Made by a program: the position numbers and the translations under genes. Positions 11,451 to 11,673 of a stretch of DNA of 64,000 nt are shown piece after piece. The stretch lies in sequence record LR756504.1, one strand, 5' to 3'. Numbering within the stretch: position 1 is the stretch's first letter; each line of letters opens with the position of its first letter. A model generated the notes under the pieces. It was not told the origin of the DNA and ran no database searches. It saw only the letters and a program-made list of their open reading frames with translations.

Positions 11451-11484
11451 TAAAACAAAAAACCCGAAGTTTATCGCTTCGGGC
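11451..11484 (-). terminator. Attenuator terminator hairpin (Thr/Asn unit)
   Basis: GCCCGAAG-CGATAAA-CTTCGGGT followed by TTTTTGTTTT, just before tRNA-Thr(GGT). Confidence 0.85.
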
Positions 11485-11510
11485 TTTCTATTATAAAGTT
11501 TTTTAATTAA

Positions 11511-11606
11511 TTATCTTTTCATAAAAGACAATACTTTATCAGAAAGCCCAAGAGTTGTTCTCGTGCGATTAATATTATTATTCATATTTCTGATAATTGT
11601 TGTCAT
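11511..11606 (-). CDS. Leader peptide MTTIIRNMNNNINRTRTTLGLSDKVLSFMKR (attenuator, Thr/Asn/Arg)
   Basis: 31-codon ORF; first 18 codons are only Met/Thr/Ile/Arg/Asn; contains GGGCTTTCT, complementary to AGAAAGCCC overlapping the terminator 5' arm. Confidence 0.8.
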   Translation of the reverse strand: MTTIIRNMNNNINRTRTTLGLSDKVLSFMKR

Positions 11607-11673
11607 TGTCTTAGTTATTTAAATATTATAACGTATATATCTTTCTTTTGTTCTTTCTTTTAGGAATTATTTT

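Follow-up and report, generated by a model that had tools for sequence, protein, structure and literature searches.

Predicted leader-peptide attenuators ahead of the tRNA arrays of a 636-kb soil phage and other megaphages

What controls the transcription of the tRNA genes that the largest phages carry in their genomes? The question is raised by a short intergenic region of the uncultured phage LR756504.1 (636,363 bp, about 26% GC), located in a stretch of 64,000 nt (hereafter the window; window position = record position minus 124,000), where a small open reading frame (ORF) and a terminator-like hairpin lie directly ahead of a tRNA-Thr gene. The original prediction read this region as a leader-peptide attenuator that senses Thr, Asn and Arg and gates a phage tRNA and synthetase unit, and considered starvation or tRNA-targeting host nucleases and toxins as possible triggers. 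The sequence of the window occurs identically in the GenBank record and in a 636,443-bp metagenome record (WNFQ01000001.1), while the window's own IMG/VR record is only 288,572 bp long and is classed as having inverted terminal repeats, so that this shorter record may be a partial or chimeric assembly. The only sequencing run holding the whole stretch is a soil metagenome.

We first asked whether the described elements are present, and found every one of them on the minus strand where it had been placed, so the observation is confirmed. In the two complementary segment pairs, GGGCTTTCT at 11549-11541 and GATAAAGT at 11540-11533 can pair with AGAAAGCCC at 11489-11481 and ACTTTAT at 11499-11493, respectively. 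The parts of this first unit (A1), of the genes behind it and of a second unit nested in the same array (A2) are as follows, in window coordinates.

11625-11656, minus strand: promoter-like motif shared by the leader units of this genome (ATATATACGTT at 11640-11630, TATAAT at 11630-11625, with an A/G-rich box upstream).
11511-11606, minus strand: leader ORF A1, 31 codons plus a TAA stop.
11553-11603, minus strand: regulatory codon run, codons 2-18 (Thr x5, Asn x5, Ile x3, Arg x3, Met x1).
11587-11596, minus strand: region 1 (UUAUCAGAAA), which pairs perfectly over 10 bp with 11545-11536 in the naked-RNA minimum-energy fold (anti-antiterminator).
11533-11551, minus strand: region 2, which pairs with 11499-11478 to form the antiterminator.
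11478-11499, minus strand: region 3, shared by the antiterminator (3' side) and the terminator (5' arm).
11457-11489, minus strand: predicted intrinsic terminator with a 13-bp stem including an A/U extension, a 7-nt loop and a U tract (-16.0 kcal/mol), ending 10 nt before the tRNA.
11376-11447, minus strand: tRNA-Thr(GGT).
10215-11375, minus strand: thrS, a 386-aa threonine-tRNA ligase (ThrRS) with catalytic and anticodon-binding domains only (TIGR00418, 476.5 bits, profile positions 171-559 of 565).
10028-10208, minus strand: tRNA-Asn(GTT) and tRNA-Thr(TGT), each 88 nt with a long extra arm.
9193-9266, minus strand: tRNA-Arg(ACG).
9161-9171, minus strand: variant of the promoter-like motif (ATATATAAGTT) belonging to unit A2.
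9070-9129, minus strand: leader ORF A2, 19 codons plus a TGA stop, with the run MIIRMRIIR at 9114-9088.
9012-9080, minus strand: A2 region 2 (9080-9072, overlapping the stop codon), 5' arm (9040-9032), 3' arm (9024-9016) and U tract to 9012.
8596-9003, minus strand: the block behind A2, consisting of tRNA-Arg(TCT), a 58-codon ORF, tRNA-Ile(GAT) and tRNA-Met(CAT).

The match between the leader and the genes behind it is better than originally claimed. All 17 codons that follow the start codon of A1 are read, under strict wobble rules, by the seven tRNAs of the downstream array, because tRNA-Arg(TCT), tRNA-Ile(GAT) and tRNA-Met(CAT) follow further on, and the unit therefore samples Thr, Asn, Arg, Ile and Met rather than only the first three. 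The ATG of thrS (11375) directly abuts the last base of tRNA-Thr(GGT) (11376), so that excision of the tRNA would leave a leaderless or near-leaderless thrS mRNA; alternatively, the cognate tRNA in the 5' UTR could serve as a binding site for ThrRS. A search of viral contigs with the ThrRS found no relatives. A related contig from a second soil study covers 11375-11677, and the changes listed all lie outside the ORF and the stems, while the flanks of the ORF vary. In this close relative, tRNA-Thr(GGT) appears to be followed by another tRNA rather than by thrS, and the synthetase may therefore be a recent insertion into the array.

Is this unit a singleton? A search of the window's own assembly with the leader region found two partial matches, both of which turned out to be further units of the same build ahead of other tRNA arrays, and inspection of the whole record brought the total to seven units, two of them in the window. 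They are, with their codon runs and what follows them:

A1, window 11606: TTIIRNMNNNINRTRTT; Thr, thrS, Asn, Thr, Arg, then the A2 block.
A2, window 9129-9070, nested: MIIRMRIIR; Arg(TCT), Ile, Met.
B, record about 222.6 kb: IAIVEIAVIGGAEEGV; Glu, Ala, Ile(TAT), Val, Gly, Glu.
D, record about 309.7 kb: FWHFHF; a Trp(CCA)-like sequence, His, Phe.
F1, record about 402.0 kb: KQDKQYQPQYD; Asp, then the F2 block.
F2, nested, after tRNA-Asp: KKQQYKQYQPQYK (no Asp); a Pro(UGG)-like tRNA, Tyr x2, Gln, Lys x4, a LysRS-like gene.
H, record about 588.4 kb: LSLCLSLSLSL; an 80-codon ORF, then Leu x4, Ser x3, Cys.

The runs thus draw on T/I/R/N/M, M/I/R, I/A/V/E/G, F/W/H, K/Q/D/Y/P, K/Q/Y/P and L/S/C, respectively, together covering all 20 amino acids, and spell the amino acids of the tRNAs behind them, with the Trp-like gene unconfirmed. 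The nested units track content, since F1 has Asp codons and is followed by tRNA-Asp, whereas F2 lies after tRNA-Asp and has none. Of the 38 tRNAs called by ARAGORN, 31 lie behind such a unit; the other seven are three tRNA-Met genes and four odd tRNA-like genes, none of which has a leader. Tested as a marker, the exact promoter-like 11-mer occurs at four leaders of the record, and the motif is supported by an alignment of six leader upstream regions, but with one mismatch allowed the 11-mer is no more frequent than its reversed control and is not usable as a genome-wide marker on its own; its promoter function is inferred. Two terminators with similar tails, at record positions 441154 (plus strand) and 454666 (minus strand), are ordinary gene ends without leaders or tRNAs.

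To assess whether the correspondence could arise by chance, we scored each leader against each array by the longest run of residues drawn from that array's amino-acid set. Each leader scores highest against its own array (17, 9, 16, 4-6, 7-11, 9-13 and 11), tied only between nested units that share tRNAs, while the other scores are mostly 0-5, the exceptions being those nested pairs. Among 3855 ATG-initiated ORFs of 15-45 codons in all six frames of the genome, each leader is the only one, or one of two, to reach its own score (A1 and A2 are unique), except for D and F1 when the unconfirmed Trp and Pro candidates are left out (36 and 4 ORFs, respectively). Strict-wobble codon matches are 17/17 for A1, 9/9 for A2, and 6/6, 11/11, 13/13 and 11/11 for the remaining units other than B, which reaches 10/16, its other six codons needing superwobble or host tRNAs. 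The leaders also pointed to two tRNA genes that the default ARAGORN run had missed: the Pro(UGG)-like gene behind F2 reaches the Rfam tRNA threshold at 29.2 bits, whereas the Trp-like sequence behind D scores only 20.8 bits, as tRNA-Sec, is called Ile with an intron by relaxed ARAGORN, and is left as a candidate.

Folding in alternative conformations had been proposed as a test of the prediction, and its outcome is in favour. Each unit has a terminator hairpin of -11 to -18 kcal/mol followed by a U tract, ending in most units 10-17 nt before the first tRNA. When a ribosome footprint is placed at mid-run, the free RNA of all 13 units tested (from this genome and from others described below) folds so that a segment just 3' of the run pairs with the terminator's 5' arm, with folds of -13 to -29 kcal/mol and z from -1.6 to -6.8; in 12 of the 13, at most 4 of 300 dinucleotide shuffles are as stable (z from -2.8 to -6.8). 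For A1 the antiterminator fold is -28.4 kcal/mol against a shuffle mean of -10.8 (z -6.8, 0 of 300 shuffles as stable), and for A2 the z is -4.4. The helix is lost when the footprint is moved to the end of the run and so reaches region 2. The region 2 sequences are unrelated between units, so the pairing rather than the sequence is what is kept. The stop codon lies 22-35 nt before the terminator core in all 13 units, and a ribosome waiting there would therefore sit on or inside the antiterminator. A clear helix between the run and region 2 in the naked-RNA fold, giving the classical four-segment layout, is seen only in A1, D and H, while in A2, B and F2 the minimum-energy fold is the antiterminator itself, so that termination in these would depend wholly on the ribosome; whether an anti-antiterminator is a general part of the design is thus left undecided by these folds. 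The last 4-5 codons of some runs lie so close to region 2 that a stall there should mask it. All 16 units inspected have a short leader ORF with start and stop codons.

A comparison of related phages, for covariation and for leader codons that change with tRNA content, had likewise been named in advance as a test, and it also supports the prediction. A second phage, LR745206.1 (634,780 bp), which shares only tRNA-level similarity with this genome, has four units whose leaders follow differently grouped arrays (H/K/F/S/W; Y/E/G; T/M/N/L/V/I/R; P/Q/D), and was the only record found when a leader peptide was searched by tblastn against 50,697 phage records. A degenerate pattern taken from the leader start found two IMG/VR contigs and about 16 metagenome contigs with Q/P/D leaders, and all that extend far enough carry Gln, Asp and Pro tRNAs 155-900 nt downstream, while 11 chance pattern hits have none. 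The same pattern scanned against bacterial and archaeal genomes gave three chance hits with no tRNAs, meaning that no cellular genome in the collection carries the Q/P/D leader pattern ahead of tRNAs.

In 13 distinct orthologues the ORF is almost invariant, even at third codon positions, while the spacer and terminator vary. Indels are 3 and 6 nt and thus keep the reading frame, and changes to the regulated codons in the run stay within the Q/P/D set (Pro to Gln, an added Asp, and synonymous Pro), with one Pro-to-Thr exception. The antiterminator is 84.9% paired, with a compensatory pair at columns 89-120 that is CG in 7 and UA in 5, and the terminator is 82.1% paired, with CG/UA and AU/GC/UA pairs, against 22-60% for slid controls. 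All 15 records of the Prevotella Lak phages, which occur in human and animal guts, hold a leader rich in C, M, H, P, G and R ahead of His, Pro, Arg, Gly, Cys and Met tRNAs. Differences between Lak-A, -B and -C include Cys to Gly and Leu to Pro, both ending in the regulated set, as well as Met to Ile and Ile to Val, which do not; the terminator stems are invariant and the loops vary. The leader of the first Lak-B1 array is uninformative, because 14 amino acids are in the downstream set, and one unit of the sequence labelled W02 and one Lak unit match only weakly.

These results support the interpretation of the region as a ribosome-mediated attenuator, with three corrections: the unit senses five amino acids, it is one member of a genome-wide family rather than a one-off, and the suggested trigger (starvation or host tRNA nucleases) remains speculation, as does a link to host tRNA decay. 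In our best reading, held with high confidence, transcription would start at the conserved promoter-like motif and a ribosome would begin on the short leader ORF while RNA polymerase moves on. If every charged tRNA needed for the run is available, the ribosome would run over region 2 to the stop codon, the terminator hairpin would form, and transcription would end about 10 nt before the first tRNA. If any of those charged tRNAs is scarce, the ribosome would stall inside the run, leaving region 2 free to pair with the terminator's 5' arm, so that the terminator cannot form and the tRNA block is transcribed. Because the run is written in the codons read by the tRNAs behind it, each unit would act as a negative-feedback loop on the supply of its own products, thrS and the LysRS-like gene, which sit inside arrays whose leaders carry Thr and Lys codons, would extend that loop to charging capacity, and nested units would re-test a subset of codons for the distal part of an array. 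The sequence elements, the codon-to-tRNA correspondence, the predicted alternative structures and their conservation are what our analysis demonstrates, whereas translation of the leaders, termination at the hairpins, and the direction and trigger of regulation are inferences from them. There is no experimental evidence of translation or termination, and no RNA sequencing run was found to hold the region, so that leader translation, 3' ends and the dependence of read-through on charged tRNA were not observed here, and we have no information on the host, on whether transcription and translation are coupled tightly enough in it, or on whether the transcribing polymerase obeys intrinsic terminators. 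Extra tRNA does not cure amino-acid starvation, and the pay-off is therefore clear only for a shortage of tRNA or of charging.

Of the alternatives, the one that survives best, although unlikely, is that the leaders are translated and control the arrays by another route, such as Rho or RNase access, transcript stability or tRNA processing coupled to ribosome position, or that they act as timers of the infection cycle rather than as sensors of tRNA supply. The antiterminator default fold of A2, B and F2 is compatible with this view, and the promoter-like motif differs from the TAnnTTTG-type boxes seen before other tRNA-like genes, which hints at a distinct temporal class. However, hairpin-plus-U-tract terminators and mutually exclusive helices are present in all units, with covariation support, and the codon-to-tRNA correspondence has no purpose in a pure timer; without experiments we cannot rule out such a route or a purely temporal role. 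Less likely still is a ribosome-independent sensing in which the run pairs directly with tRNA anticodons, in the manner of a T-box, or binds a protein, the ORF being incidental. The logic of tRNA status controlling a terminator ahead of translation genes is that of T-box leaders, and the near invariance of the orthologous ORF at third codon positions could mean constraint at the RNA level. Against this, the T-box model (RF00230) gave no hit at E up to 10 across 11380-11700 or at E up to 1 across 8000-13000, every unit has an ATG, an in-frame run and a stop at a fixed distance from the terminator, indels are multiples of three, substitutions are synonymous or stay within the regulated set apart from the exceptions given above, and runs mix up to five amino acids, which no single tRNA contact would explain. 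The weakest alternative, that the hairpin merely ends the upstream 147-codon gene and that the AT-rich spacer happens to contain an Asn/Ile/Thr-rich ORF, could draw on the low GC content (which makes Asn and Ile codons common), on the two ordinary gene-end terminators with similar tails and on an Rfam Thr_leader hit that covers only the hairpin, but it is contradicted by seven units that each match their own array at about 3e-4 per unit against the 3855 small ORFs, by their conservation across phages, and by the lack of room for a promoter in the 10 nt between U tract and tRNA.

Leader-peptide attenuation as such is known from the amino-acid biosynthetic operons of Proteobacteria (trp, his, thr, leu, ilv, pheA), with which the present units share a short ORF with a run of regulatory codons, an intrinsic terminator, a mutually exclusive antiterminator that uses the terminator's 5' arm, a stop codon close to the structured region and, in some units, a 1:2 helix. 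They differ in that the regulated genes are tRNA genes and synthetases rather than biosynthetic enzymes, the runs mix three to seven amino acids that mirror a tRNA array, units are nested inside arrays, and the setting is a phage genome. There is no sequence homology, since the Rfam Thr_leader (RF00506), His_leader and other weak matches fall below threshold; the Thr_leader match scores 28.6 bits against a gathering threshold of 55, with 62 model positions skipped and only the terminator hairpin aligned. In the pheST attenuator of E. coli (pheM leader), a component of the translation apparatus is controlled by a leader rich in the cognate codon, in the same way that thrS lies behind Thr codons and the LysRS-like gene behind Lys codons, but only a synthetase is controlled there, and by a single amino acid, whereas here the tRNA genes are the main cargo. 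T-box riboswitches also sense tRNA status and choose between terminator and antiterminator ahead of translation-related genes, but they bind uncharged tRNA directly and need no ribosome, while here an ORF is conserved instead. In the E. coli thrS operator, which acts in translational autoregulation, a mimic of tRNA-Thr lies immediately 5' of the thrS start codon; here the corresponding RNA is a complete tRNA gene that abuts the ATG, and any operator role for it was not examined.

Phage tRNA genes are usually discussed as constitutive codon-usage helpers or as spare parts against host tRNA nucleases, and how they are regulated is essentially unknown. Our literature searches, of a collection too incomplete to prove novelty, found no description of attenuators ahead of tRNA genes, and we know of none; demand-gated arrays would be the first case we know of in which tRNA genes are controlled by leader-peptide attenuation. 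This would explain why megaphage tRNAs are grouped into blocks of particular amino acids with synthetases embedded, and the units would be compact, modular sensors for individual charged tRNAs; their occurrence in Lak phages shows that the design is not a curiosity of one soil contig. A broader reading, which we consider somewhat more likely than not, is that megaphages may run a self-regulating tRNA economy, in which nearly every elongator tRNA gene, covering all 20 amino acids, sits behind a leader peptide that samples exactly the codons those tRNAs read, so that each block and its embedded synthetase would be switched on only when that charged tRNA runs short, possibly through host tRNA decay during infection or host anticodon-nuclease defences. 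This would be feedback control of tRNA genes by translation itself, and the leaders would also serve as a readable list of which tRNAs a phage expects to lose.

Besides tRNA-Asn(GTT) and tRNA-Thr(TGT) in the window, one tRNA-Lys(TTT) (record 399979-400067) has a long extra arm, these genes being 88-89 nt long, which is unusual for these identities. The LysRS-like gene (record 398748-399884; 18748-19884 of locus L054, minus strand) encodes a 378-aa class II synthetase best matched by lysS models (341-359 bits, below cut-off, N-terminus missing) and lies among four tRNA-Lys genes behind the Lys-rich leaders F1 and F2. Cys/His-rich ORFs that look like HNH homing endonucleases are inserted between tRNAs of the arrays (window 9451-9984, minus strand; record 400147-401199 and 589276-590035), although Pfam gave no hit for the 177-aa one. 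A 293-codon ORF with a KMSKS motif (MetRS-like C-terminal part) lies upstream of leader B, outside its control (96-977 of locus L002, in the window's own assembly).

A family of tRNA-like genes has anticodon loops that ARAGORN cannot read (window 12122-12197 and 12393-12467; record 281045, 402360, 402507 and 461088), and their function is unknown; those at record 402360 and 461088 are preceded by TAnnTTTG-type boxes (TTAACTTTGTA) typical of Bacteroidota promoters and have no leader ORF. Finally, Lak-B1 carries a tRNA with anticodon UUA (about 2976 of locus L079), which would read TAA, and since all leaders examined except A2 end in TAA, late-infection suppression could lengthen leader translation.
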